From NCBI RefSeq assembly GCF_001194135.2, contig NC_068983.1, forward strand, positions 118,530,114 to 118,567,215: DNA of 37,102 nucleotides, written 5' to 3'. Below are positions 1-35,209 of this stretch, piece after piece (position 1 is the first letter of the stretch; the number at the start of each line of letters is the position of its first letter). The notes beneath the pieces were generated by a model that saw only the letters and a program-made list of their open reading frames with translations, was not told where the DNA came from and searched no databases. The DNA comes from Octopus bimaculoides (lineage: Eukaryota). The position numbers and the translations under genes were made by a program.

Positions 1-18
1 TATATATATATGTATATG

Positions 19-51
<33 letters not shown>

Positions 52-78
52 ATATACACACACATGCACACACACACT
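1..78. repeat. Compound (TA)/(TATG)/(CA) microsatellite
   Basis: Direct reading of the sequence. Confidence 0.95.
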
Positions 79-693
79 CCATAGAAAAACTAGACATTAG
101 CTTAAATTTAACTCTAGCTTTAATACTTTCAGATATAAATTGATAAATCAATAACATTCCAATAAATTCAAATGAATTTGAAAATAAACTCTATACTTGC
201 TTGTATTATTATTATTAGCATTATGAATATGAAACTTAAAGGAAGTGGTTACAAGTAATGATATCTTTTGTTTCTACAACTATAGGCTATCAGAAAAGAA
301 ACTGCCAATGTCAGTGTACACACACACACACACACAGAGGCATACCTCTTACATATTTTTCAACTTTATGCTGTGTTTGTAAGAATGTAATCAAAAAATA
401 AACAGCAACTTCAGTCAATTTATCTGACTTCATGTCGGTCTCAGTGAAACACATTTAAAAGCATAAAAATGAAAAAAAAAAATGAAAATAAACCTATAAA
501 CTAACATTGAAGTGGATAATCAAATAGAATAGATATGAAAATATGTACAAGCCATTTTAAAGCAGATATAAACTAATAAATTTGTTTTAAATGTCTTTTT
601 ATGTATTTTTCATGTTATATCATTTTTGTATTTTAAGTCACATGTCTTGTAACCATTTACTGACATATGTTGAGGTATACCTCTCTCTCTCTT

Positions 694-734
<41 letters not shown>

Positions 735-1254
735 TGAAAAATATCATTCTACTTATGTATTTTTTGATGGTGGTAGTAGTGGTGGGGAGTCAAATTTTGT
801 AGGTGTTAGCTCAAAGTTTTGAGATCCTATGTCTGAGGTTATTATTATTGTATATAATTCTTAGCTTTACAATTTCACTTATCTAACAGGAACCAAACAA
901 GCTTACTGAGGCAAAGGGCCAGTTGAGAAAATTATTACAGTACTAGAGAGATGCTGTAAATAAACATTGAGAAAGAGTGGCTATATTAGGTTAAAACAGT
1001 TGTATTAGAAATACATATCATTAATTAGCTAAATATTTCAGCATCTATTATCAGTGTGTGTACAATTACTGCACCAGTAATTTAATAGCATTTGATGTAT
1101 TTATGAAGTATTTTACTTTAACTTCTATCTAGATTAGTGAAAGTTAGACAAATTTGTCATCTCTTTCTCCCTCTCTGTCTCATGGAGCAGGTTTTATTTA
1201 CATATGTCTTTTTTAAGAATAAAAATTTGCTTAGAAAGAAGGTAGTATATTATT

Positions 1255-1420
1255 GTTGTTGTTTAGCCCGAGGTCAATTGTGATTAAGTAGACCTATGAC
1301 AACCAAATGCATTCCTGCTATGATAATTATCTTGTTATTCCAATATATTGTTTCAATAACTACATAATTCAATGTATCTTTCCTTTCTTCGTTTGTTTTT
1401 AATGTTAGGGTGTTATCAGA
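1255..1420 (-). mobile_element. Old dispersed repeat (SINE-like, (AAC)n tail), degenerate copy
   Basis: Reverse complement ends ...gtcataggtctacttaatcacaattgacctcgggctaaacaacaacaa, resembling the tail at ~18340-18395 and the copy at 26270-26460. Confidence 0.4.
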
Positions 1421-3155
1421 GACAAACTTCTATACAGACACATTGTCTCCTTTATTGGTTTGTAGTAGGATAAGCTAACAAGGCTGGATCAATGTATTTC
1501 CTTTATCACATAAATTTTTTTATTACAGTCTTACACCCATGTTCTATGCTATACGAGTAGGATAGGTTTACGTTGTAAATATGTATAGAAATTTTCATAC
1601 TTCTTGTACAAATCTTTTGACAGATTGAAGTTATTCTTACAGCTTAGAATTCAACTGATAAGCAAAAGTAAATCACTGTTAATAAACCCCACTGACTCAA
1701 GCAGAATAAAATTCTTTGCTTAGAATCACACTGCAATGAATTTAGCAAGGTTTGAACTTACTATAAGACTAGCAATCTAGTACTTTATTATTTCCATTCA
1801 GTGACATTGACAAAGTGTATCAATGTGTTACTGAGATTGGTAACAAGATCATAGCTCAAAAGGAAAAAATAAGGTAGAAAATATGGAACTTCTAGTATTA
1901 CTACTTTGATAACAAAAGAGCTCATGTGAGAAAATAATTTTCAATCTCTAAATAAAAAATAGTTACTAAATTACACTGTGTAACAAAATTTTTATTTATC
2001 TATTTTTTGTCTTTGGTCAGTAAGTGTTATTTTCTATTCACTTCTATCTAGAAGTCAAGGGAAATGACAACTATTCCCATCAAACTTTGCTTTTGTGACC
2101 TGGAAATCAATGTTTTGAAACTGATCTATTTTCCATTACATTTCAGACAGATTCAGTGATGAGTTGCTGAAGCAGAAATATTGTTATAGCAAATATACTG
2201 CTCAATACCATAGATTTGCTTGTCAGTTGCTTGACTGTAATCACTTGAGCATGTCCCTTAGTGTCTGACAATATGTGTATCTCTGATCATGAGCAGGAGT
2301 AGCAGGGGAGCATCATAGCCATGTATTGAGAGGGATTCTTTGGGGTTTGAACAAATGTAACAAAAGCAAAGTTTGAAGGAAATATTAGCTATTTTCATAC
2401 TTTCTAGGGGTAAGCAAATAGGAAATAACAGTTGCTACTCAAGGACAAAAATTGCATTACAGTGTTATTCAGGAAACATTACAAGTAAATTAAATTAAAG
2501 CTGTTTGAGAACTAGATATGAAGTGAACATAGAAATATATGTTTGTATTTTAGAATTAAGTGTACATGCAAATACAGATAATTCCTATGACACAGCTAAT
2601 GTTTAGTTTTTTTTTGCTATGATTCTGTATCATGAGTCATTTGTGATTGCATTCACACTTGATTTAAATATGGATATGTCTTAAAAGCTTAGACGTATGC
2701 CTTGTCAACAGCAAATGATATCTAAAAACGTAACTTTAACTATGCTAAACATTTAGTCTCAGAAAAATTTAAGCACTGTTAGTCATTGGCTATATTCAGT
2801 ACCCATGAACTATACTCAGCCATTATGAAATACATTCAGTAATTAACTAAACTAAGGATAAATTATGATTCAAGTTAATATGGAACTAAACCACAACAGA
2901 AAGATATGATGAATTAGTTTCAGAACCTATAATAATATTTCAATAACAATCTATATTATTATGGGAAAATGGAGTTCACAGTGACAACTAATATGACATA
3001 CTGACAGATCCTACAATTATATGTTTACTTTCAATGATTATCAATAATTAGGAAATATGTTACAATATATTTTAATAACAATATAATAAACAAATAAATA
3101 TGTATCAGTTAAGAATACATTCATAAAAATATGATAACTTTGTTTAAAGATTAAT

Positions 3156-3385
3156 TTAACCCTTTTGTTACTATATTTCTGTTGAAATACTCTGAGTTTC
3201 TTTCAATTAATTTTAAATATAACAAAGAATTTAGTAAAATAGCTTAGTTATCATTAAACTAGCGTTATGAACATAAATTGTGATTAAAGTTTGGTGGGAG
3301 ATTTTAATTCAGAACTTTTGAAAACAAGACATTTGTATGACTGAACAAGAGGCAGTTTCAGTCGGGTTGGTATCAAAAGGGTTAA
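3156..3385. mobile_element. piggyBac-like MITE, family A (~230 bp)
   Basis: TTAA|CCCTTTTG...CAAAAGGG|TTAA: TTAA target duplication plus short TIRs. Related pieces at ~6785-6900, ~17560-17699 and 29668-29973. Confidence 0.8.
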
Positions 3386-4453
3386 ATGTTCCTGGAAACA
3401 CAAGTGGCTAGCCTAAAGTTAGTTCTTTTAAAACTTTTATTGAAGAATTTATCAGATTAGCAGATTTATTTACTTCCTCAATTAACTAACTGCAGAGCTT
3501 ATCAACATTTATATCATTAAAATAAGTTGAAATTTGAGATATACTGAGCAAAAATGTTCAAATTTGTGGTTAAGTGAAGCCTTCTGCTGATTATGTATCC
3601 ATGATAACTGAATTAATTTGCCACTTTTAATGATTCAATCTTGTTGTTTTTAAATTCTTTGTGATGAGAGTATTTATATTATCAACACTGACAGAGTGGG
3701 TATTAGTTGTACTTGAAGTTTTGGGTAGCCTGTTTATCAATGTACCAGTTATCTCAGGAGTCTATTTCTACAAACTCTATTGCTTCACTGAGTATAGAGT
3801 TTCTCCTTACTTTACATATTGAGTAATACCATTTTGTTTCATATTATCAGTGCTATGACTGGAATAGTTCTTTATTGTTAGTCCTACACTATTATGCATA
3901 AAAAATTACACATATACAAAACTAAATGGGAATACTAAATAATGCAATATAAGACAGTGAAACACCAGATGAAGTGCTTAGTTTTATCCTTCCATGTTCC
4001 ACATAGTTGATCATATCTAAAGGATCATTGCAATAAGTTTCAATAATATACTACTCACAAGTCAACTAAAAAATTACATGTTTTTCTGACAAAATAAAAT
4101 ACTAATATGATTATAGAAATCTTAAAGAGAGCAATTCCTACTTCTGTCATCCAGAGCTCCTTTGATTCCATTCTAACAGTGTTCTATTAACCACTTATTG
4201 TTCTTGTGTATTGTTTAAACTAACATTATTTTGTTATTCTAAACACTACTTGTCTAAATAAATTGTTTTGTAAGACAATTTAGAAATTCAAAGATGCCTT
4301 TAACAGACTATTTTAACTTATTTAAAGGACAGTTATATACATAGTAGATACCATAGATTATATAAATTTTGAAGCTTATTAAAACATTTTGATCTATTAC
4401 TTTGAAAGGTCTTACAGTGTGATACAATTATTTATGAAAGATAACTTGAGTGT

Positions 4454-4680
4454 TTAACCCTTTAATATTCACATTATTCTGCCAAAAGTAATTCTTATTT
4501 ACTCACATTGTTTTGAATTAATCATGAATTATCTTGTAGCTATGGGATTTTGATGAGGTGACCATTAATTTTTTAGAATGACATTGTAGAGGTATGAGAA
4601 GCCATATCTGGCCAGTTTGAACATAAAACAGGCAGAATATTTTGGACGGATATGGTTGGTTTAAATGCTAAAGGGTTTAA
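4454..4680. mobile_element. piggyBac-like MITE, family B (~225 bp)
   Basis: TTAA|CCCTTTA...TAAAGGG|(T)TTAA. Internal sequence shared with 16237-16466, 18069-18287 and 31782-32006. Confidence 0.8.
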
Positions 4681-4960
4681 GGACACCATTAGTTAATTTA
4701 CATTCAGTTCTCATAGACATAACATACATTTATTAAATATGCTTACAGTTTATTGGGTATATATGAAAGGTTAAAAGCTTTTTAATAATTTGCTAATCAG
4801 CATGATTTCGTTTATGAGAAATGAAATTTAAATAATTAGATTTTCTGACAAATCCAAGATATTTCTGTCATACCTTAACTGAGAAATGAAACAATAATTG
4901 CATTGCTACATAATGGCTATATTATAATACTGATTTTACTTTAATATAATATATAATAAT

Positions 4961-5283
4961 GTGAAGATGCATGGCTTAGTGGTTAAGGTATTTGGCTCAT
5001 GATTGTAAGGTCATGAGTTCAATTCCTGGCGACGCATTGTGTCCTTGAGCAAGACACTTTATATCACATTGCTCCAGTCCACTCAGCTGACAAAAATGAG
5101 TAGTACCTGTAATTTCAAAGGGCCAGGATTGTCACTCTCTGTCATGCTGAATCTTCCTGAGAACTATGTTAAGGGTACATGTGTCTGTAGAGTGCTCAGC
5201 CACTTACACATTAATTTCACGAGCGGGCTGTTCCATTGATTGGATCAACTGGAACCTTTGTTGTCATAACTAATGGAGTGCCA
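4961..5283 (+). mobile_element. tRNA-headed SINE (head X + tail P)
   Basis: A box TGGCTTAGTGG and B box GAGTTCAATTCC. Central GTGTCCTTGAGCAAGACACTTT block shared with 32838-33184; 3' half shared with 13078-13449. Confidence 0.85.
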
Positions 5284-6088
5284 GTATAGTATAGAATAAT
5301 ACTTCAATATTTCAGCAATCATTTTAAAGTGATACTTTATTGAAATTAAAAACAGCCCGATCAATTCACTAACTTTCAACTATAATGAAACACTAGTACA
5401 ATGATATAATTTGATATTTATATCAAAGCATGAAGCATGTTCTTACACACACACATGCGTGTGTAAAATATTCCTACTTTATGAAAATATTTCTCTAGTT
5501 CTGCAAATGAAAACTTATTTGTTGAAATGTTAATTAGTTCATTTTTGATTCTGAGCAAAAACTAATTTTTGTATTTACAGATTAGACTAAATAATAATTA
5601 CATAACAAATTGGCACTTTTCTATTAAATTGTCATTGTTGGTATATACAAGCAATAAAGAGTATACATGAATTTACATGTCCTCAGATTCTGCAGTGAAT
5701 ATTTTTTGCTTATACTTGTGATATTGCCAGAAATATAGAAACTGACAAAAAAAAAAAAAAAAAAAAAATTACGATAATTATACATATATACACACTCATC
5801 AACACAACAAATATTTTTAGGTGAAGAATTTAATATATTATCAATGTAACTACGTCATATTTATATAAAACCAATGTTTTCTTTTCACTTTTGAAAACTT
5901 TTCAGGAATTCTATTTTTCTACCAGTTACTTATAAACTATATTTATTGTGGTATGGTGTTTGTCCATGAAATTGCAGGTTTTCGTATTGACTCACAAAGA
6001 AGGATATTCAAACTACGTTAAAGAAGCGGAAAAAAAAATCAATTTTTACTTTTGCAACTTAGATGATTAGAAATGAACAATGAATTAC

Positions 6089-6089
<1 letters not shown>

Positions 6090-6154
<65 letters not shown>
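6090..6154. repeat. (ATT)n microsatellite
   Basis: Perfect trinucleotide run. Confidence 0.95.
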
Positions 6155-6155
<1 letters not shown>

Positions 6156-6164
6156 CTGAAGATT

Positions 6165-6243
6165 AAGGCACCGAGCTGGCAGAATTGTTAGCACGCTGGG
6201 CAAAATGTTTAGTGGTATTTTGTTTGTGCTATGTTCTGAGTTC
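6165..6243 (+). mobile_element. 5' head of SINE family 2, running into a gap
   Basis: aaggcaccgagctggcagaattgttagcacgctgggcaaaatg matches the head of 19753-20086. Confidence 0.75.
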
Positions 6244-6635
6244 NNNNNNNNNNNNNNNNNNNNNNNNNNNNNNNNNNNNNNNNNNNNNNNNNNNNNNNNN
6301 NNNNNNNNNNNNNNNNNNNNNNNNNNNNNNNNNNNNNNNNNNNNNNNNNNNNNNNNNNNNNNNNNNNNNNNNNNNNNNNNNNNNNNNNNNNNNNNNNNNN
6401 NNNNNNNNNNNNNNNNNNNNNNNNNNNNNNNNNNNNNNNNNNNNNNNNNNNNNNNNNNNNNNNNNNNNNNNNNNNNNNNNNNNNNNNNNNNNNNNNNNNN
6501 NNNNNNNNNNNNNNNNNNNNNNNNNNNNNNNNNNNNNNNNNNNNNNNNNNNNNNNNNNNNNNNNNNNNNNNNNNNNNNNNNNNNNNNNNNNNNNNNNNNN
6601 NNNNNNNNNNNNNNNNNNNNNNNNNNNNNNNNNNN
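6244..6635. other. Assembly gap (N)
   Basis: N run. Other gaps: 14366-14375, 15554-15872, 19879-19888, 23070-23317, 24298-24410, 34967-35114. Confidence 1.
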
Positions 6636-6670
<35 letters not shown>

Positions 6671-6784
6671 AGAGAGAGGTTTAAAGAGAAAACAGATCAC
6701 TATAAATGTAAATAGTATTTCAAAGAGTTAGCACATATTAACCTTGGTATAAAGTAATAGAATGACATGAGGACTTCAAATGAA

Positions 6785-6900
6785 ACTCAACCGTTCTTAT
6801 ATCAACCTTGCTGAGACAACTCCTGGTTCTATGATACAAACTTCCGATTTTAAAGGAATCTATATTAAAACCTTTCAAAATTTTGTGTTAATTTATGTTG
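6785..6900 (-). mobile_element. Partial family A MITE
   Basis: Reverse complement (…gtatcatagaaccaggagttgtctcagcaaggttgatataagaacggtt) resembles the right half of 3156-3385 and 17560-17699. Confidence 0.55.
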
Positions 6901-7715
6901 TGCTCTTATTGAAGATTCACACATTGACATAAAGTGCAAGGCTCATTGGTGCTAGGTCTCTGCATTTTCTACACATAGAGAAGCAGACTGTTGTTTTTAA
7001 TTGACAGCCAAGTAAAAATACAGAAGACAAGTTTGATGTTTAAAAATCAGTACAAACACTGATTATATGCCAGCAGCAGTGGTAGCATCCTGAATTTTCT
7101 CTGACCTGTTCTTAACTTAAGTACTTAACTTTCAGAGCAACCATCTTTCCTGCAAATCTCGTCTTCCTAGGTAACAAAAGCTACTGACTAATTCTAGTGA
7201 GCTAACCAGACATTGAAGAAAATCCATTTCTGAGTGTTCATAGTATGCACTGTGCACTGCTCCAGGGTATCTATCACACTGATGCTTACCTTCTCTGTTA
7301 GTCTACCTGCAATTCTACTACACCTCATACTGCTTGTGTGTCCATAGCTTACATTGGGCACAGTGTACAGAGTTTATATGTGATCCTTTCCTGTATACTG
7401 AACAAGACAATTTCCATGAAGATAACAAAATCCAGTCTTTTTTTCTCACTCACTAAAATCTTAGTCATTGCTAAATTTGTCATGAGGTTTCTTGATTCTT
7501 GGTTTAATGCTTAGAATTCTTGATTCTTGGTTTGGTTTAATGCCTAGAATTTCCTCTCTAATCCTACTATTGTCTAAGCTAGGAGAACAACTCATTGAAC
7601 AATCCAGTCTTAAACTCCTCTGTGATGGCCTGTAGGGCTATGATGAATAGGAGATGACTTTGATGAACTCCTGCTTTCATGCTAAATTCTTCACTGACTT
7701 TACTTACTGCATATT
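6895..7715 (-). pseudogene. Decayed RTE-type LINE ORF fragment (RT core to C-terminal region)
   Basis: Manual minus-strand translation gives broken motifs: EEFSMKAGVHQ...LLFIIALQAITEEFKTG, INSVHCAQCKLWTHK, LELVSSFCYLG, RKF...LPLLL. The last two parallel the intact fragment at 22740-23069 (LEVVDSFRYLG, KFRELLPLL). Many stops and frameshifts. Confidence 0.8.
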
Positions 7716-7839
7716 TGTGAGTGAGTGAATACATACACACATTTTGCTATGAGTGGACAGGTCTTGTGTCGTATCACATATCAGCAGTCAGCACAGTTCA
7801 ATGACAATGATATACAAAGTATGTTATGTTATATTATAT

Positions 7840-8063
7840 TATATTATCCTTTGCCATATCGCGGTTCACCTACTGCAATTTATTATTTAAGCTTATGTTG
7901 ATTCCTCTGTGGTGTTGTTTTGCATTTATAATGAAATAAATATGTACAAATTATAAAAATTATTAAAAAAATACACAGTACAGTACTGTTTCTACTTTGT
8001 GGATTTTCACCTACCACAGAGGGTTTAGAATGTAACACCCGTGATATTTGAGGGATTACTGTC
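7840..8063. mobile_element. Degenerate Tigger/pogo-like (Tc1/mariner superfamily) MITE
   Basis: Right end reverse complement cagtaatccctcaaatatcacggg versus left end tattatcctttgccatatcgcgg. Weak TIR match. Confidence 0.4.
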
Positions 8064-8724
8064 TATATATATATATAATGATAGAAAATTTAATATCAGT
8101 ATGTTTATAGAATGCTGATAATGCTAAATACTGTGTGTATATGTGTGTTAGTATGTGCATAGGACTTGTGAATGTCATTGTATAAAGAAAGATCATACAA
8201 GAGTTTATGTTTGTGTACAGTTGTAAAACTAAATTATAACTGTGATGATGATAATGATGATGATGATGATGACTAAATTTAATTATTATAAATGTAAGTG
8301 CAATAAGTAGAACAAGACAAAACAGGTATTTCTTGGTTAACAAGTTATACCTGTTGTTTAACAAAATACTCTCATGGATTTCTTTCCATCATAAACAAAC
8401 CCTCACACACATTGAAATGAAAATAGTTATAGAAAAAATATTTTCATAGTTTAAGTACACATTTCACAGTACTTTAAATGTATAAAAGTATTTTTAAAGA
8501 AACTCAACATAAAGCACTCTATGTATATTTAACAGTTTTTATATAGATATTACCACTTTTAATATAGCCATTGGAGCAAGAAACTATAACACTGTTTTAT
8601 AAAAGAGACATATCTTTAATTTGTGCAAGAGTAAAATTTTACTATCTAAAACTATTATTGTAAGAACTGTAATATATGTGTGTGTGTGTGTGTGTGGATT
8701 TATTATTTTGGGAGAAATACTTAC

Positions 8725-8818
8725 TTGCAATATTTCTCATCTAAGGGAGGTAACCGGTACCAGCATTCACCTTTGTTTAGACAATAATGTTGGTCTTCAC
8801 ACTGTTTTTCTGATGGTT
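8725..8818 (-). CDS. Internal coding exon: N-terminal part (Cys1-Cys4) of an EGF-like domain, (E)PSEKQCEDQHYCLNKGECWYRLPPLDEKYC(K/N)
   Basis: Acceptor ttgtatgtttgtattctattcag|AA and canonical donor TGCAA|gtaagt. 94 nt, phase 1 to phase 2, 30 open codons. Pattern C-x5-C-L-N-x-G-x-C-x11-C-x matches the EGF consensus (YCLNxGxC). Confidence 0.85.
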
Positions 8819-8972
8819 CTGAATAGAATACAAACATACAATAATATAGTTTTCAATGGACAATTACAAATGAGAAATCTTCATGGTAAACAAATTTTTT
8901 TCAGTAGAGTGTATGAAATTTCAAACTTGAGAGTAATTAGGTTGGGGGTTAGGAAAGCTACTTTGATCATCT

Positions 8973-9170
8973 CTAATATTGATTTCTTTTGGAAGCAGGA
9001 GTAGCAGAAACGTTAAGGTGCTTCACAAAATATTTTAGTTTTACTCCTCTATAATCTAAGTTCAAACAGTGCTTAAAGTCATCTTTGAATTTTATATCTT
9101 CAGGTTCAATAGCTGAAATACTAAGCAGGGATAGTGCTATGCACAAAGTAAACAAGGCTATTATTTCCAT
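8973..9170 (-). CDS. Candidate 65-aa ORF with signal-peptide-like N-terminus (MEIIALFTLCIALSLLSISA|IEPED...)
   Basis: Hydrophobic 20-residue leader followed by a charged region. Preceded on the minus strand by an acceptor-like ttttttgtgtaatcattcag. No strong donor links it to the EGF exon. Confidence 0.3.
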   Translation of the reverse strand: MEIIALFTLCIALSLLSISAIEPEDIKFKDDFKHCLNLDYRGVKLKYFVKHLNVSATPASKRNQY

Positions 9171-9728
9171 GGGTTCTAAATCTCAGGATACCATTGAATT
9201 TCTGAATGATTACACAAAAAATTTTTAATCCAACTAAGATCTCAAAAATTTAGCAAGAAAGGGAACAGGTAAGATAATTCCTGGAAGAGAGAAGAATGAA
9301 GGGTTGGAGATGAGCAGTTCATGCTGATGCTATGAGGTATTACATGATGTATGCAAATTTTTCCAGGTAACAGATTATCTTGGTGATAAACATTATCATA
9401 ATTATAATTTTTTGATTGCATTTATCATCTGGAATAAAAAGGGGTGTTAACTGGAGATAGATGTATGAAAAAACGAAAATTTGGAAAAAGAAGGGTGCAC
9501 ATCGAAAGCCTGGCTGGGAGATGAGGTTCACAAAAAACTGAGAGGATTCATATAGTGTAGAGCTTGCAGAAAAAGGCACACATTGTGAAACTGGAAGAGA
9601 GATGAAATATGTAAAAAAGAAATTAATGCAATAGGAATGTAATAATGAATTTTTCCTCCTTGGTTCCATTCCCTCTCTCAACAAAAAAGTCATTGTCTTG
9701 CAAGTTACTTGGTGATCTCGCTGGTGCA

Positions 9729-10053
9729 GGTACCATGTAAAATGCACCTATGCTGATGCCATGTTAAAGGCACTTGTGCTGGTGCCATGTAAAAAACACC
9801 TGTGCTGGTACCATGTGAAAAGCACTTGCACCAGTGCTATGTAAAGAGCACCTGTACTGGTGTTGCATAAAAAACACCTAGTACACTCTGTAAAGTGATT
9901 GGCATTAGGAAGGGCATCCAGCCAAAGAAACTCTCTGAAAACAAACAATTGGAGCCCGGTGCAGTTTCCTGGCTTGTCAGCCCCTGTTGAATCATCCAGC
10001 CTATGCCAGCATGGAAAATGGATGTTAAATGATAATGATGATGATGATGATGA
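9729..10053 (+). mobile_element. RTE-type 3' UTR/tail with ~6 tandem ~26-bp units
   Basis: Contains ggcattaggaagggcatccagc...atgccagcatggaaaatggatgttaaat(gat)n, as at 23450-23620. Preceded by ggtgccatgtaaaaaacacctgtgct-like repeats. Confidence 0.8.
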
Positions 10054-11009: not shown

Positions 11010-11187
11010 ATGGCTGTGTGGTAAGTAGCTTGCTTACCAACCACATAGTTCTGGGTTCAGTCCCACTGCGTGGCACCTTGGGCAAGTGTCTTCTACTATA
11101 ACCTCAGGCCAACCAAAGCCTTGTGAGTGGATTTGATAGACGGAAATGGAAAAGAAGCCTGTTGTATATATATATATATGTGTGTGT

Positions 11188-11232
<45 letters not shown>

Positions 11233-11423
11233 TCTCCGCAACATTGCTTGACAACCAATGCTGGTGTGTTTACGTCCCCGTAACTTAACGGTTCGGCAAA
11301 AGAGACCGATAAAATAAGTACTAGGCTAACAAAGAATAAGCCCTGGGGTCGATTTGTTCGACTAAAGGCGGTGCTCCAGCATGGCCGCAGTCCAATGACT
11401 GAAACAAGTAAAAGAGTAAAAGA
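11010..11423 (+). mobile_element. SINE family 1 (tRNA head, central TA/TG microsatellite, (GAGTAAAA) tail)
   Basis: A-box-like TGGCTGTGTGG and B-box-like GGTTCAGTCC. Near-identical to 11442-11840 and 30637-31083. Confidence 0.9.
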
Positions 11424-11441: not shown

Positions 11442-11840
11442 AGGTGCAGGAGTGGCTGTGTGGTAAGTAGATTGCTTACCAACCACATGGTTCTGGGTTC
11501 AGTCCCACTGTGTGACACCTTGGGCAAGTGTCTTCTGCTATAGCCTTGGGCCGACCAAAGCCTTACGAGTGGATTTGGTAGACAGAAACAGAAAGAAGCC
11601 CATTGTATATAGATATATATATGCATGTGTTTGTGTCTCTGTGTTTGTCACCCCACCATTGCTTGACAACCAATGTTGGTGTGTCTACATCCCCGTAACT
11701 TAGTGGTTCGGCAAAAGGGACCGATAGAATAAGTACTAGGCTTACAAAGAATAAGTTCTGGGGTCGATTTGTTCAACTAAAGGCTGTGCTCCAGCATGGC
11801 CGCAGTCAAATGACTGAAACAAATAAAAGAGTAAAAAAGA
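11442..11840 (+). mobile_element. SINE family 1, second tandem copy
   Basis: Full-length match to the preceding copy. Confidence 0.9.
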
Positions 11841-14027: not shown

Positions 14028-14245
14028 TTACTCTTTACTCTTTTATTTGTTTCAGTCATTTGACTGCAGCCATGCTGGAGCACTGCCTTTAGTTGAGCAA
14101 ATCTACCCCAGGACTTATTCTTTGTAAGCCTAGTACTTATTCTCTTGGTCTCTTTTTGCTGAACCGCTAAGTGACAGGGACATAAACACACCAGCATCGG
14201 TTGTCAAGCAATGCTAGGGGAGCAAACACAGACACACAGACATAC

Positions 14246-14296
<51 letters not shown>

Positions 14297-14497
14297 CACG
14301 ACAGGCTTCTTTCAGTTTTCGTCTACCAAATCCACTCACAAGGTCAGCCCGAGGTCATAGTAGAANNNNNNNNNNGTAAGCCTAGTACTTATTCTCTTGG
14401 TCTCTTTTTGCTGAACCGCTAAGTGACAGGGACATAAACACACCAGCATCGGTTGTCAAGCAATGCTAGGGGAGCAAACACAGACACACAGACATAC

Positions 14498-14548
<51 letters not shown>

Positions 14549-14708
14549 CACGACAGGCTTCTTTCAGTTTTCGTCTACCAAATCCACTCACAAGGTCAGC
14601 CCGAGGTCATAGTAGAAGACACTTGCCCAAGGTGCCACGCAGTGGTACTGAACCTGGAACCATGTGGTTGGTAGGCAAGCTACTTACCACACAGCCACTC
14701 CTGCACCT
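14028..14708 (-). mobile_element. SINE family 1 (242 bp duplicated across a 10-N gap)
   Basis: Reverse complement matches family 1. 14124-14365 is identical to 14376-14617. Confidence 0.9.
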
Positions 14709-15553: not shown

Positions 15554-15872
15554 NNNNNNNNNNNNNNNNNNNNNNNNNNNNNNNNNNNNNNNNNNNNNNN
15601 NNNNNNNNNNNNNNNNNNNNNNNNNNNNNNNNNNNNNNNNNNNNNNNNNNNNNNNNNNNNNNNNNNNNNNNNNNNNNNNNNNNNNNNNNNNNNNNNNNNN
15701 NNNNNNNNNNNNNNNNNNNNNNNNNNNNNNNNNNNNNNNNNNNNNNNNNNNNNNNNNNNNNNNNNNNNNNNNNNNNNNNNNNNNNNNNNNNNNNNNNNNN
15801 NNNNNNNNNNNNNNNNNNNNNNNNNNNNNNNNNNNNNNNNNNNNNNNNNNNNNNNNNNNNNNNNNNNNNNNN

Positions 15873-16475: not shown

Positions 16476-16776
16476 TCATCATCATCATCATTTAACATTC
16501 GCTTTCCATGCTGGTATGGGTTTGATATGGAGCTGGCTATCAGAGAGCTGTCCAGACTCCAGTTGTCTGTTGAGAGCTGCCCAGACAACAGCTGTCTGTT
16601 GAGGGCTGTCCAGACTCCAGCTGTCTGTTGAGAGCTGTCCAGACAACAGCTGTCTGTTGAGAGCTGCCCAGACTCCAGCTGTCTGTTGAGAGCTGTTCAG
16701 ACTCCAGCTGTCTGTTGAGAGCTGTCCAGACTCCAGCTGTCTGTTGAGAGCTGTCCAGACTCCAGCTGTCTGTTGC
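16476..16776 (-). mobile_element. RTE-type 3' tail with an 8 x 29-bp minisatellite (16545-16776)
   Basis: (cat)n-ttaacattcgctttccatgctggtatggg is the tail's reverse complement. Unit gagctgtccagactccagctgtctgttga repeated 8 times. Confidence 0.85.
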
Positions 16777-17107: not shown

Positions 17108-17513
17108 CTCTTTTATCTTTTACATGCTTCAGTCATTAGTTTGTGGCCATGCTAGGCACCATCTTGAAGAATTTTTAGTCAAATGAATCAGCCCCAGTAC
17201 TTATTTTTTGCTAAGCCTGGTACTTATTCTATCAGTCTCTTTTGCTGTAACACTAAGTTATGGCGATGTAAACACACTAACACCAATTGTCAAGTGGTAG
17301 TGGGGGACAAACAAAGACACACACACACACACACACATTCAAATATATATATATATACAACGGCCTTCTTTCAGTATCTGTGTACCAAATTCACTCACAA
17401 AGCTTTGGTCGGTCCGAGGCTCAGTAGAAGACACTTTCCCAAGTGCCATGCAGTGGGACTGAACCCAGAATCATGTGGTTGGGAAGCATGTTTCTTACCA
17501 CACAACCATGCCT
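17108..17513 (-). mobile_element. SINE family 1
   Basis: Reverse complement matches family 1 from head to tail. Confidence 0.85.
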
Positions 17514-19752: not shown

Positions 19753-20086
19753 GCAAAAGGCGGCGAGCTGGCAGAAACGTTAGCACGCCGGTCGAAATGC
19801 TTAGCGGTATTTCGTCTGCCGCTACGTTCTGAGTACAAATTCCGCCGAGGTCGACTTTGCCTTTCATCCTTTCGGGGTNNNNNNNNNNGAAATGCTTAGC
19901 GGTATTTCGTCTGCCGCTACGTTCTGAGTACAAATTCCGCCGAGGTCGACTTTGCCTTTCATCCTTTCGGGGTCAATTAAATAAGTACCAGTTACACACT
20001 GGGGTCGATATAATTGACTTAATCCGGTTGCCTGTCCTTGTTTGTCCCCTCTGTGTGTAGCCCCTTGTGGGCAGTAAAGAAATAAA
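19753..20086 (+). mobile_element. Young SINE family-2 copy with 16-bp TSD (85 bp duplicated across a 10-N gap)
   Basis: TSD AAACATAATTATATAT at 19737-19752 and 20087-20102. CpG-rich body. 19794-19878 equals 19889-19973. Confidence 0.9.
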
Positions 20087-20102: not shown

Positions 20103-20522
20103 ACAGGCATGGCTGTGTGGCAAGAGGCTTGGTTCTTAACTACATGGTTCCAGGCTACTGTGTGGCACCTTGGGCGAGTGTCTTTTACTATAGCCTTGGG
20201 CAGACCAAAGCTTTGTGAGTAGATTTGGTAGATGGAAACTGAAAGAAGCTTATTGTATGTGTTTGTGTGTGTGTGTGTGTGTGTGTATGTTTGTGTGTAT
20301 TTGTGTCTGTGATTGTCTCCTCATTACCACTTGACAACTGGTATTGGTGTGTTTATGTCCCAGTAACTTAGTGGTTCAGCAAAAGAGAGCAATAGAATAA
20401 GTACTAGGCTTTAAAAAGAAAGAAAGGCGTGGGGTCAATTTGTTCGACTAAAACCTTTGAAAGAGGTGCTCTAGCATGGCCACAGTCAAATGACTGAAAC
20501 AAGTAAAAGAATAAAAGAATAA
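20103..20522 (+). mobile_element. SINE family 1
   Basis: Head, central (TG)n and tail all match family 1. Confidence 0.85.
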
Positions 20523-20987: not shown

Positions 20988-22739
20988 CCACTTTGCAAAA
21001 CAAATTGGATGGATGAAATAGGGAAAAAGTTTTTCAAAGAGGTAAGTTTAATGAGAGTCTTTTGACAGAACAAGAAGAATTATCTTTATTTATTTCATCT
21101 GAGGTTCTGAAATTGAGGAAGGTTAAAGGTAAGAACTTTCTTCAATACAAGACAGCAGATGTGAGAATCTTTGGTTAGAACTGTTAAAATGATGAGAAAA
21201 TGGTGCTAGAAGCTGGGATGTCTATGAGGGAGACTTTAACGAAGACTGTTATTGACAGTGTGATGTTTGAAGTTATCTAGAATTTATTGACTACACTAAA
21301 TATAGTGTATCTATGGACTTCACTAACAGCTATCTGTCTGTACCAAATTTTCTTCCCATGTTCATGTTTAACCTGCCTTATGTATTTTTGTTGTTGTTTT
21401 TTCTTAAGAAGTAGAGCACATTATTTATCAAACTTACTGTTGAGAGTCGGCACTTAGCATTCAGCTATTAAGAAATATTAGGAAAATATATTTCATAAAT
21501 GTTACATACACACACATGCATATACATTAATACACATATACCCACACACATAAATACACACACACACACACACATACAGACAGACAATAGATAGTCAGTC
21601 AGACAGATAGACAGACAAACAGATAAATAGATAGCTAGGCAGACAGACATGAACAGATAGACAGACAGGCAAACAAAGAGATAGACCAATAGACAGATAG
21701 GTATATAGATAAATATTTCTAAGAAATACTGCACAGAGTTTAAATGTTTTTCTGAGAAATATTTCAAGAACTAGAAATGAAATACATGGCTTAATTTCAG
21801 TAGAATGAAAGCAATAGTTATAGGTCATTGAAGAACTAATAGAAGTTGATAGAAATGATTTAACAAGAAAACTGGGTTGTAATTTGAGACGGAATGCTAT
21901 AGGAATGCTGTAGGGCCAAAAATATCTTTTATACTAATTAATCTAAATGTTCTGGCATTGGACAAATTATATTAAGCTCCTAAGTTTACTACCTGCTGTT
22001 TCATCTATTACATAAAAATAACATGGCTTAGTAACATTTGTGGGTGTACTGGTTAGTGTTTGTAAGCAAAATATTAGTTTTGAATTTAATATCTATGTAA
22101 TATATATCTAAGGTTTAGCTAAGATATTATTTGAAATTGGCCACAAGAATTTATATAATTGAAATACAATGATACTGTAAACCTCTTCAGAATAAATGAC
22201 AAATCAACAATTTGCAGAAATATTGCGTATAAAAATGTGTAGAAGTACTACTATATATTTAAAGTATTTAATGTATCTTCTTTATAAAATATATCTAATA
22301 TTTGTTAGCTAATATTTGTAGTAAGAGGTGTGGGAAGTGATTCTGAAATAATTGGCAAATAAGTGCAAAAAATGTTAATTTTATATTATACTTGTGACAA
22401 ATGTTTCTTTCCGACTAAGTATAAAATATCACTTTATTTTCTCAATAAATGTTAAACTGAGGTAGCAAATATGATTGAAAATATAACAAATTCCAATTTA
22501 GATATCTGTAATAAAAATGATATGCTAAAATGAAGACAATTAGCTCTTGAATAATGTACAATTTTTAACCTGATTTAAGAAAGAAAGATGAATTTGTTGT
22601 GAGATGTATAAATTCAGAATCAATAAACCAGTAATGGTTGTTTCTGAAGGCTGAAAACCCACACAGATTTTTTTCCATTATTTCCATTTCCCTTCTTCTG
22701 AAATTTATCACAACATTTGTAAGTATTTATTAAAATGAA

Positions 22740-23620
22740 ACAGGAAACAACTTCTATCTCATTCCAGGGTGAAAAACTAGAGGTAGTCGATAGCTTCCGC
22801 TATCTGGGCGACCAAGTTAGTAGTGGGGGTGGGTGCGCTGAAAGTGTAGCTGCTAGAATAAGAATAGCCTGGGCAAAGTTTAGAGAGCTCTTACCCCTGC
22901 TGGCGACAAAGGGACTCTCACTCAGAGTAAAAGGCAGACTGTATGACGCATGCGTACGAACAACCATGCTACATGGCAGTGAAACATGGGCTGTAACTGC
23001 TGAGGACATACGTAAGCTCGCAAGGAATGAAGCCAGTATGCTCCGTTGGATGTGTAATGTCAATGTGAANNNNNNNNNNNNNNNNNNNNNNNNNNNNNNN
23101 NNNNNNNNNNNNNNNNNNNNNNNNNNNNNNNNNNNNNNNNNNNNNNNNNNNNNNNNNNNNNNNNNNNNNNNNNNNNNNNNNNNNNNNNNNNNNNNNNNNN
23201 NNNNNNNNNNNNNNNNNNNNNNNNNNNNNNNNNNNNNNNNNNNNNNNNNNNNNNNNNNNNNNNNNNNNNNNNNNNNNNNNNNNNNNNNNNNNNNNNNNNN
23301 NNNNNNNNNNNNNNNNNGCCTGACTGGCTCCTGTAGGATTTTCGAGCGAGATCGTTGCCAGTGCCCCTGGACTGGCTTGTGCGGGTGGCACATAAAAGAC
23401 ACCATTTCGAGCGTGGCCGTTTTCGTGCGGGTGACACGTAAAAGCACCCACTACACTCTCTGAGTGGTTGGCGTTAGGAAGGGCATCCAGCTGTAGAAAC
23501 TCTGCCAAATCAGACTGGAGCCTGGTGTTGCCATCCGGTTTCACCAGTCCTCAGTCAAATCGTCCAACCCATGCTAGCATGGAAAGCGGACGTTAAACGA
23601 TGATGATGATGATGATGATG
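22740..23620 (+). mobile_element. 5'-truncated RTE-clade LINE (C-terminal ORF region, gap, 3' UTR, (GAT)n tail)
   Basis: Open frame GEKLEVVDSFRYLGDQVSSGGGCAESVAARIRIAWAKFRELLPLLATKGLSLRVKGRLYDACVRTTMLHGSETW is the typical RTE post-RT region. Tail ends ttaaacgatgatgatg. Confidence 0.92.
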
Positions 23621-24288: not shown

Positions 24289-24587
24289 CCCCCCCCCNNN
24301 NNNNNNNNNNNNNNNNNNNNNNNNNNNNNNNNNNNNNNNNNNNNNNNNNNNNNNNNNNNNNNNNNNNNNNNNNNNNNNNNNNNNNNNNNNNNNNNNNNNN
24401 NNNNNNNNNNACTATGACTAAGCTTCATATGACTCAAAGTTTTGTGCGACTTGCTCATCTCATCAGATGTGATGGACATGTTCTATGCATCCACAGAACT
24501 AAATTGCGTGAAGCTGTGTCAAACTGTTATTAAATACATGTAACTCCAACTAAATGAATAGAGTGATACTTTTACCTTTTCACTCAC

Positions 24588-28911: not shown

Positions 28912-29267
28912 TTCTTTTATTCTTTTACATGTTTCAGTCATTTGATTGCAGCCCAGCCATATTGGAGCACTGCCTTAAAGAGTTTTTTAGTTGAAGAAAT
29001 CGACCCCCCAGGACTTATTCTATTGGCTACTTTTGCTGAAGCGCTAAGTTACAGGGGACATAAGCATACCAACATCAGTTGTCAAGCAATGACAGGGAGA
29101 CAAACACATCCACAAAGACATACACATATACGACAGGCTTCTTTCAGTTTCTATCAAATCCACTCACAAGGCTTTGGTTGGCCTGAGGCACTTGCCCAAG
29201 GTGCCATGCAGTAGGACTGAACCTGGAACCAGGTGGTTGGGAAGCAAGCTTCTAACTACACAGCCAC
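28912..29267 (-). mobile_element. SINE family 1
   Basis: Reverse complement matches family 1. Confidence 0.85.
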
Positions 29268-30636: not shown

Positions 30637-31083
30637 AGTGGCTGTGTGGTAAGTAGCTTGCTTACCAACCACATGGTTCCGGGTTCAGTCCCACTGTGTG
30701 GCACCTTGGGCAAGTGTCTTCTACTATAGCCTCGGGCCGACCAAAACCTTGTGAGTGGATTTGGTAGACGGAAACTGAAAGAAGCCCGTCGTATATATGT
30801 ATATGTATGTATATATATATATATATGTGTATATATGTGTATATATATATATATATTTATATATCTGTATGTGTGTTTGTGTGTCTGTTTGTGCCCCCAC
30901 CATCGCTTGACAACTGATGGTGGTGTGTTTACGTCCCCGTAACTTAGTGGTTCGGCAAAAAGAGACCGATAGAATAAGTACTAGGCTTACAAAGAATAAG
31001 TCCTGGGGTTGATTTTCTCGACTAAAGGTGGTGCTCCAGCATGGCTGCAGTCAAATAACAGAAACAAGTAAAAGAGTAAAAGA
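30637..31083 (+). mobile_element. SINE family 1 (young copy)
   Basis: CpG-retaining full-length match to 11010-11423. Confidence 0.9.
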
Positions 31084-34966: not shown

Positions 34967-35209
34967 NNNNNNNNNNNNNNNNNNNNNNNNNNNNNNNNNN
35001 NNNNNNNNNNNNNNNNNNNNNNNNNNNNNNNNNNNNNNNNNNNNNNNNNNNNNNNNNNNNNNNNNNNNNNNNNNNNNNNNNNNNNNNNNNNNNNNNNNNN
35101 NNNNNNNNNNNNNNTATATATATATATGTATATATATATATATAAACATATACATGTATATATACTATAGATTTACATATATAAACAAACATCCATCCAT
35201 ACATACATA

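Follow-up and report, generated by a model that had tools for sequence, protein, structure and literature searches.

The segment at 8725-8818 on the minus strand of this Octopus bimaculoides DNA raises the question of whether a lone cysteine-rich exon of 94 nt is real and, if so, which protein it helps to encode. We examined it against the whole analysed stretch of 37,102 nt (hereafter the window) and against related cephalopod proteins and transcripts. Read on the minus strand, 8725-8818 runs AACCATCAG...TATTGCAA, with tattattgtatgtttgtattctattcAG directly before it and GTAAGT directly after it. The exon, with its CAG acceptor and GTAAGT donor, is thus found where the preliminary description had placed it, entered in phase 1 and left in phase 2 as read from the sequence. 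Its 3′ splice site occupies 8819-8846 (minus strand), where the pyrimidine-rich tract tattattgtatgtttgtattctattc ends in AG (26 nt of pyrimidine-rich sequence before the exon, ending CAG), and its 5′ splice site, GTAAGT, lies at 8719-8724 (minus strand); both are placed by sequence and by the divergence of proteins and cDNA described below.

A codon is split at each end of the exon. The frame runs from the last two bases of the first codon to the first two of the last (AA CCA ... TGC AA) and translates as (x)PSEKQCEDQHYCLNKGECWYRLPPLDEKYC(K/N), and the spliced product is (Q)PSEKQCEDQHYCLNKGECWYRLPPLDEKYC(K), carrying Cys1 to Cys4 of an EGF domain. Of the end residues given earlier, the last is Lys, within the K/N allowed, and the first is Gln rather than Glu, the upstream exon giving the C of the CAA codon. 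Past the donor, the unspliced frame reads AAG TAA and stops, so it continues only by splicing. The ORF track does miss the exon, as had been noticed, because the mechanical ORF over it (8721-8837, minus strand) has 38 aa from its ATG and falls below the default cut-off of 60 aa. A 127-aa ORF runs antisense across the exon at 8621-9004 (+); it has no homologue or domain signal, and we take it as spurious.

We conducted an exhaustive HMMER search of 1.84 billion representative sequences with the exon peptide, which matched P0001 with E = 2.4e-14 (97%, 31/32 residues) and P0003 with E = 3.1e-9 (81%). All 31 complete codons are unchanged in proteins of O. vulgaris, O. sinensis and O. bimaculoides. 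The first two species contribute CAI9720502.1 and XP_036357500.1, both named "pro-neuregulin-2, membrane-bound isoform isoform X2," and O. bimaculoides contributes XP_014769146.1, XP_014769147.1 and XP_052822448.1, each an "uncharacterized protein LOC106868416." The peptide is therefore recovered from cephalopod sequences as anticipated, but the exon is not "hidden," as it had been called, since it is already part of RefSeq/GenBank models of three Octopus species, two of which bear the pro-neuregulin-2 name. On the strength of protein identity and junction position, the exon probably belongs to the gene listed as LOC106868416 in O. bimaculoides, LOC115209589 in O. sinensis and "pro-neuregulin-2, membrane-bound isoform" in O. 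vulgaris.

Further members of the family are Argonauta hians LOC115209589 and a cuttlefish-type transcript cluster that includes Acanthosepion pharaonis CAE1296430.1. Argonauta is identical at 29 of the 31 residues, and decapodiforms differ at 6 of the 31 (81% identity). Examination of the five-sequence cephalopod EGF-domain alignment reveals that the six cysteines, GECW, LPPLDEKYCKC and G-x-R-C-E are invariant. The searches returned one gene per species, and the profile search recovered no homologue outside cephalopods. The 32-aa exon peptide alone has no useful match in Pfam or the PDB, because the models need more than four of the six cysteines. A word-indexed protein search with the 43-aa stop-to-stop ORF gave no candidate, which is a false negative, since proteins with an identical exon sequence are present in that database. 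Two other HMMER matches, P0002 and P0004, were rejected as spurious, being repetitive proteins that match only through WY(R/Q)LPPLD-like repeats. The A. pharaonis model CAE1296430.1 (P0011, 265 aa) stops at ...EKYCK, the exon's last codon; the second half of the EGF domain, on the far side of the long intron, was missed by automated annotation.

Evidence for the splice junctions comes from both cDNA and protein. A spliced decapodiform Logan transcript, L001 (SRR20545806), aligned to the window without gaps, is 78% identical over exactly the 94 nt of the exon, whereas in the flanking 45 nt identity drops to 31% upstream and 24% downstream. Because cDNA identity ends at both junctions, splicing does occur at the 8818 acceptor and the 8725 donor, and the Cys4/Cys5 intron is genuine and, on this comparison of octopus genomic sequence with a decapodiform transcript, conserved. 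At the 5′ junction, the proteins read FL(F/I)VTQ followed by PSEKQ, whereas the genome upstream of the exon reads FVFYSE; at the 3′ junction, they continue from EKYCK into CHIDYTG(E/Q)RCE, whereas the genome meets a stop. With 31 codons identical in Octopus proteins and cDNA identity confined to the exon, homology settles that the exon is real, and these comparisons lead us to regard it and both its splice junctions as confirmed at the sequence level.

The rest of the coding sequence lies outside the window. We found no other exon of the gene in the 37 kb by tblastn with every retrieved isoform, no other cysteine-rich exon, and no Pfam domain in any minus-strand ORF of at least 30 aa. Upstream of the exon, 8847-37102 (minus strand) is intron by tblastn of all retrieved isoforms, a part of more than 28 kb that runs off the window, with abundant SINE-like repeats, microsatellites and assembly gaps. 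Downstream, 1-8718 (minus strand) is likewise part of an intron (>8.7 kb) that runs off the window. The next exon, expected to start N-TGY, is not within 1-8724: neither pattern searches (AG-N-TGY...C and C-x-[FYW]-x-G-x-C) nor tblastn with the downstream protein found a Cys5-Cys6 exon there, and that exon is beyond the window. The gene spans 291.8 kb in the O. vulgaris assembly GCA_951406725.2 and 233 kb in Argonauta, and a size above 200 kb, together with very long introns, explains the lone exon in a 37-kb window. In the O. vulgaris assembly, the next gene downstream of the P0001 locus lies on the opposite strand and encodes a 637-aa protein of the tubulin-tyrosine-ligase family (Pfam TTL), a possible synteny anchor.

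To see the exon in its protein context, we used XP_014769147.1 (656 aa). A hydrophobic N-terminal signal sequence (about residues 1-23) and a conserved N-terminal region (about 24-130) precede an Ig domain at 161-251, with Cys173 and Cys235, that scores above Pfam cut-offs (P0005, 161-251: Ig_3, 39.9 bits against 30; I-set, 28.1 against 23.7; V-set, 37.3 against 26). A single EGF pattern follows at 260-295, with Cys6 at residue 295, and then a 20-residue stalk (296-315), a 25-residue TM helix that is the sole internal hydrophobic segment (316-340), and a cytoplasmic tail of 316 residues without a recognised domain (341-656). One EGF domain followed by a TM helix is what the preliminary description had predicted for a ligand gene, and its other observation, a Cys1-Cys2 spacing of 5 in place of the usual 7, also holds, being conserved in all five cephalopod sequences compared. 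In full, the EGF domain has the pattern C-x5-C-x5-C-x11-C-x-C-x8-C and ends YTGERC.

Profile scores for the remaining regions are modest. The Pfam EGF model reaches 17-20 bits, against a cut-off of 21.5, in the Argonauta and decapodiform proteins and is not listed for the Octopus proteins. Pfam finds no SEA, MAM/MATH, Kazal/follistatin, mucin-repeat or further EGF domain at E ≤ 1, and the Pfam Neuregulin intracellular domain has no match at E ≤ 1 in four cephalopod proteins. NRG2_N (PF25518) is matched weakly and in P0005 only (13.8 bits, E = 0.069, cut-off 27). An AlphaFold2 model of the 315-aa ectodomain isoform, built with a five-sequence alignment, had a mean pLDDT of 36.8 and a pTM of 0.25, and we judged it unusable.

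Features of ErbB ligands include a splice site between Cys4 and Cys5, closeness of the EGF domain to the TM segment and, except in tomoregulins, an Arg before Cys6 (Stein & Staros 2006, PMC1618406), and the neuregulin type combines an Ig I-set domain, an EGF domain and a TM segment (Barberan et al. 2016, PMC4914847). For this comparison, the window supplies Cys1-Cys4, and Cys5-Cys6 were taken from the proteins identical over the exon. The GTAAGT donor (8724-8719) lies between Cys4 and Cys5, the intron cutting the AAG codon of the single residue between them after its second base. In XP_014769147.1, 20 residues separate Cys6 from the TM helix; the Arg of YTG(E/Q)RC is invariant in 5 cephalopod sequences; and the Ig domain is N-terminal to the single EGF domain, which is followed by one TM region. 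Against the ligand spacing C-x7-C-x4-5-C-x10-13-C-x-C-x8-C, five of six spacings were counted as fitting, the first loop being two residues short. The ligand-type signature thus consists of a Cys3-Cys4 spacing of 11, Y-x-G-x-R before Cys6 and the Cys4/Cys5 intron.

We also compared the complete EGF domain with all PDB sequences, using first the sequence by itself and then a profile of five species, and ErbB ligands came out best both times. With the profile, the top 21 matches (E from 2.8e-6 to 2.7e-3) comprise EGF/TGF-alpha chimeras, epiregulin, EGF, NRG1, Spitz, heregulin and epigen, ErbB ligands without exception; in the epiregulin alignment, YCL-x-G-x-C and YC(K/R)C-x-x-x-YTG-x-RCE can be read. 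The first Notch EGF appears at E = 0.026, far below the ErbB ligands. With an Ig domain, a single EGF domain and a TM helix, and with PDB best matches that are all ErbB ligands, the proposal of a cephalopod EGFR/ErbB-ligand gene stands in refined form: the architecture supports a putative neuregulin-type ErbB ligand. By analogy, we infer that it would bind and activate a cephalopod EGFR; molluscs have two EGFRs (PMC4914847).

Several other explanations bear on these data. The segment could be a chance open frame or a dead duplicated copy, a pseudo-exon, and the window has no companion exon of the gene. Taken alone, the cysteine pattern is suggestive, not proof: in 200 order-2 Markov simulations, the bare four-cysteine spacing is expected about 1.8 times per window by chance. 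The same spacing with the G-x-Cys3 motif, however, is expected only 0.04 times per window, before splice signals are required; the frame and the consensus splice sites are intact over a peptide identical at 31/31 residues to three Octopus species; the exon is conserved between octopods and decapodiforms; and the searches gave a single gene per species. With gene spans of more than 200 kb, a single exon in 37 kb is what one would expect, so the missing companions are also accounted for, and a chance frame or a pseudo-exon is very unlikely to be the right answer. The alternative that the preliminary description had named, a protein with tandem EGF repeats, would make the exon one module of a protein like Notch, Delta, fibrillin or crumbs; the C-L-N-x-G-x-C motif and a phase-1 5′ boundary are common to all EGF modules, and an exon peptide that matches nothing in Pfam or the PDB when used alone does not speak against it. 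Every full-length protein containing the exon nevertheless has one EGF pattern and at most one Pfam EGF stretch, which refutes the tandem reading; the low PDB ranking of Notch EGFs and the want of a second cysteine-rich exon in the window point the same way, and we give this possibility practically no credence.

A closer competitor would be a non-signalling membrane protein with a juxtamembrane EGF domain, similar to mucins, IMPG2, meprins, neuroglycan-C or tomoregulins. The premise of the preliminary description, that ErbB ligands carry an intron between Cys4 and Cys5, is supported by the literature, but the same splice-site/TM signature occurs in mucins 3/4/12/17, meprins, IMPG2, neuroglycan-C and tomoregulins (PMC1618406) and is therefore not exclusive to proven ligands; a 316-residue cytoplasmic tail without a recognised domain would also suit such a protein. 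What makes this explanation improbable is that Pfam finds none of the SEA, MAM/MATH, Kazal/follistatin or mucin-repeat domains, that the proteins compared invariably have the Arg before Cys6 that is missing from tomoregulins, that the best PDB sequence matches are proven agonists, and that the Ig, EGF and TM layout is that of the neuregulin type (PMC4914847). We consider it highly probable that the feature is a constitutive exon encoding the first two-thirds (Cys1-Cys4) of the only EGF domain in an Octopus neuregulin-type ErbB/EGFR-ligand precursor.

Transcripts and predicted isoforms of the putative ligand differ at both ends. In decapodiforms, P0003 and P0008, from two species, join ...NLQS to an exon starting (V)KPTDEC in another frame; this join skips the TM-encoding segment and ends EAN-stop, and P0003 alone is found on 9 contigs. 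At positions 1240-1360 of L001 (SRR20545806), the stalk end, TM helix and proximal tail are skipped, giving a predicted secreted Ig-EGF isoform of 315 aa, whereas P0015 is a TM-containing decapodiform form. The RefSeq-predicted isoforms P0025, P0026, P0027 and P0028 start MILNEN(I/V)LQNK without a signal peptide, which points to an alternative 5′ exon, and some of them differ by a 22-residue cytoplasmic cassette, VRINLILFASHVVGIKPFLHRG. Neither the alternative 5′ exon nor the cassette is in the window.

If the protein behaves as neuregulins, TGF-alpha and Spitz do, its precursor would be anchored in the membrane in type I orientation, and a sheddase of the ADAM or rhomboid type might cut the 20-residue stalk. 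Release could alternatively follow from skipping of the TM-encoding exon(s), and the TM-skipping decapodiform transcripts directly support this second route to a soluble form. Either route would free an Ig-EGF fragment whose EGF domain may bind and dimerise a cephalopod EGFR/ErbB receptor. More speculatively, cephalopod neuregulin-type ligands might form a fast-evolving, lineage-restricted branch in which the short Cys1-Cys2 loop alters receptor contacts and a conserved TM-skipping switch alternates between membrane-bound and secreted Ig-EGF forms, an idea that we think doubtful. If it were true, the secreted Ig-EGF factor would become a candidate for the signal that nerves supply in arm regeneration.

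To place the cephalopod protein among known systems, we compared it with ligands from vertebrates, flies and other molluscs. Vertebrate NRG1 and NRG2 share with it the Ig domain, single EGF domain, short stalk, TM helix and long cytoplasmic tail, the Cys4/Cys5 intron and the Arg before Cys6 (PMC1618406, PMC4914847), as well as a very large gene with huge introns and isoforms that differ at the 5′ end; in decapodiforms, TM-containing and TM-less forms both occur. Unlike NRG1 and NRG2, the cephalopod proteins have a Cys1-Cys2 spacing of 5, not 7, no Neuregulin intracellular domain detectable with Pfam and an NRG2_N match that stays below the cut-off; in the PDB comparison, epiregulin and EGF rank slightly above NRG1 as matches to the cephalopod EGF domain. 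The proposed relation to vertebrate neuregulins rests on the architecture and an automated name. The missing Neuregulin domain, weak NRG2_N match, five-residue loop and want of a non-cephalopod homologue do not support strict NRG1/2 orthology, as judged from sequence.

Drosophila Vein resembles the cephalopod protein in its Ig and EGF domains and its Cys4/Cys5 splice site (PMC1618406), and the TM-less decapodiform isoform is likewise a predicted secreted Ig-EGF protein; Vein, however, is secreted only and has no TM segment, whereas the main cephalopod form is predicted to be membrane anchored. Ligands of the TGF-alpha/Spitz type (EGF, epiregulin, epigen, Spitz and Keren) provide the best EGF-domain matches (E from 3e-6 to 1e-3) and have a single juxtamembrane EGF domain in a type I precursor that undergoes shedding, but they have no Ig domain and much shorter precursors, and Drosophila spitz is without the Cys4/Cys5 intron (PMC1618406). 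Among molluscs, Lymnaea L-EGF acts via an ErbB-type receptor and is a small secreted protein without Ig or TM segments (PMC4210270); it is, like the candidate described here, a molluscan EGFR-pathway ligand, but the cephalopod protein has both an Ig domain and a TM helix. The molluscan ligands catalogued so far are one EGF-like ligand in Lottia gigantea and one NRG-like ligand in Crassostrea gigas (PMC4914847, Table 2), and neuregulin-type ligands are expected in bilaterians, one having already been counted in a bivalve mollusc (PMC4914847).

RefSeq/GenBank already contain models of the gene from three Octopus species and from Argonauta, and it is not a discovery; little new biology is added here beyond tying the window to a gene of about 0.3 Mb. 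The case does illustrate that, in a reading of sequence alone, cysteine spacing and the place of an intron can be enough to recognise a solitary 94-nt exon and assign its gene family correctly, and it flags some cephalopod models, namely CAE1296430.1, truncated at the exon, and the O. bimaculoides gene, labelled "uncharacterized." Our literature search found no paper characterising a cephalopod neuregulin gene. Neuregulin is only a hypothetical nerve-derived factor in cephalopod arm regeneration (PMC10550383), and the gene is an uncharacterised candidate for that growth factor.

The window is AT-rich (≈33% G+C) and crowded with microsatellites, N gaps and SINE-like copies. Searches for tRNA genes and Rfam families across it returned nothing. 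A SINE-like repeat of ≈240 nt that encloses a (CA)n(TA)n microsatellite is present in at least eight copies with 70-80% identity among them, at 11091-11330 (-), 11533-11745 (-), 14124-14365 (+), 14376-14617 (+), 17212-17429 (+), 20183-20411 (-), 29007-29171 (+) and 30719-30990 (-). These repeats yield many spurious cysteine-rich "ORFs," and a Pfam search of a few repeat-derived ORFs gave only noise. The two 242-nt copies within 14124-14617 are 100% identical and flank a 10-N gap at 14366-14375; this pair was most likely created by the assembly, a true tandem duplication being the less likely reading. Other runs of N, at 6244-6635, 15554-15872, 19879-19888, 23070-23317, 24298-24410 and 34967-35114, bring the total to 1240 with that gap included and indicate a gapped scaffold, and several of the gaps adjoin TA or TG microsatellites. 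One of the runs cuts an open frame at 22723-23069 (+), ...FRYLGDQVSSGGGCAESVAARIRIAWAKFRELLPLL..., which presumably resembles the C-terminal tail of a LINE reverse transcriptase; Pfam gave nothing significant for it. Finally, there are two tandem repeats of longer unit: a 29-nt minisatellite with 8 copies and 91% matches at 16543-16775, and a 26-nt repeat with 5.3 copies at 9724-9862, in the intron ≈900 nt upstream of the exon.
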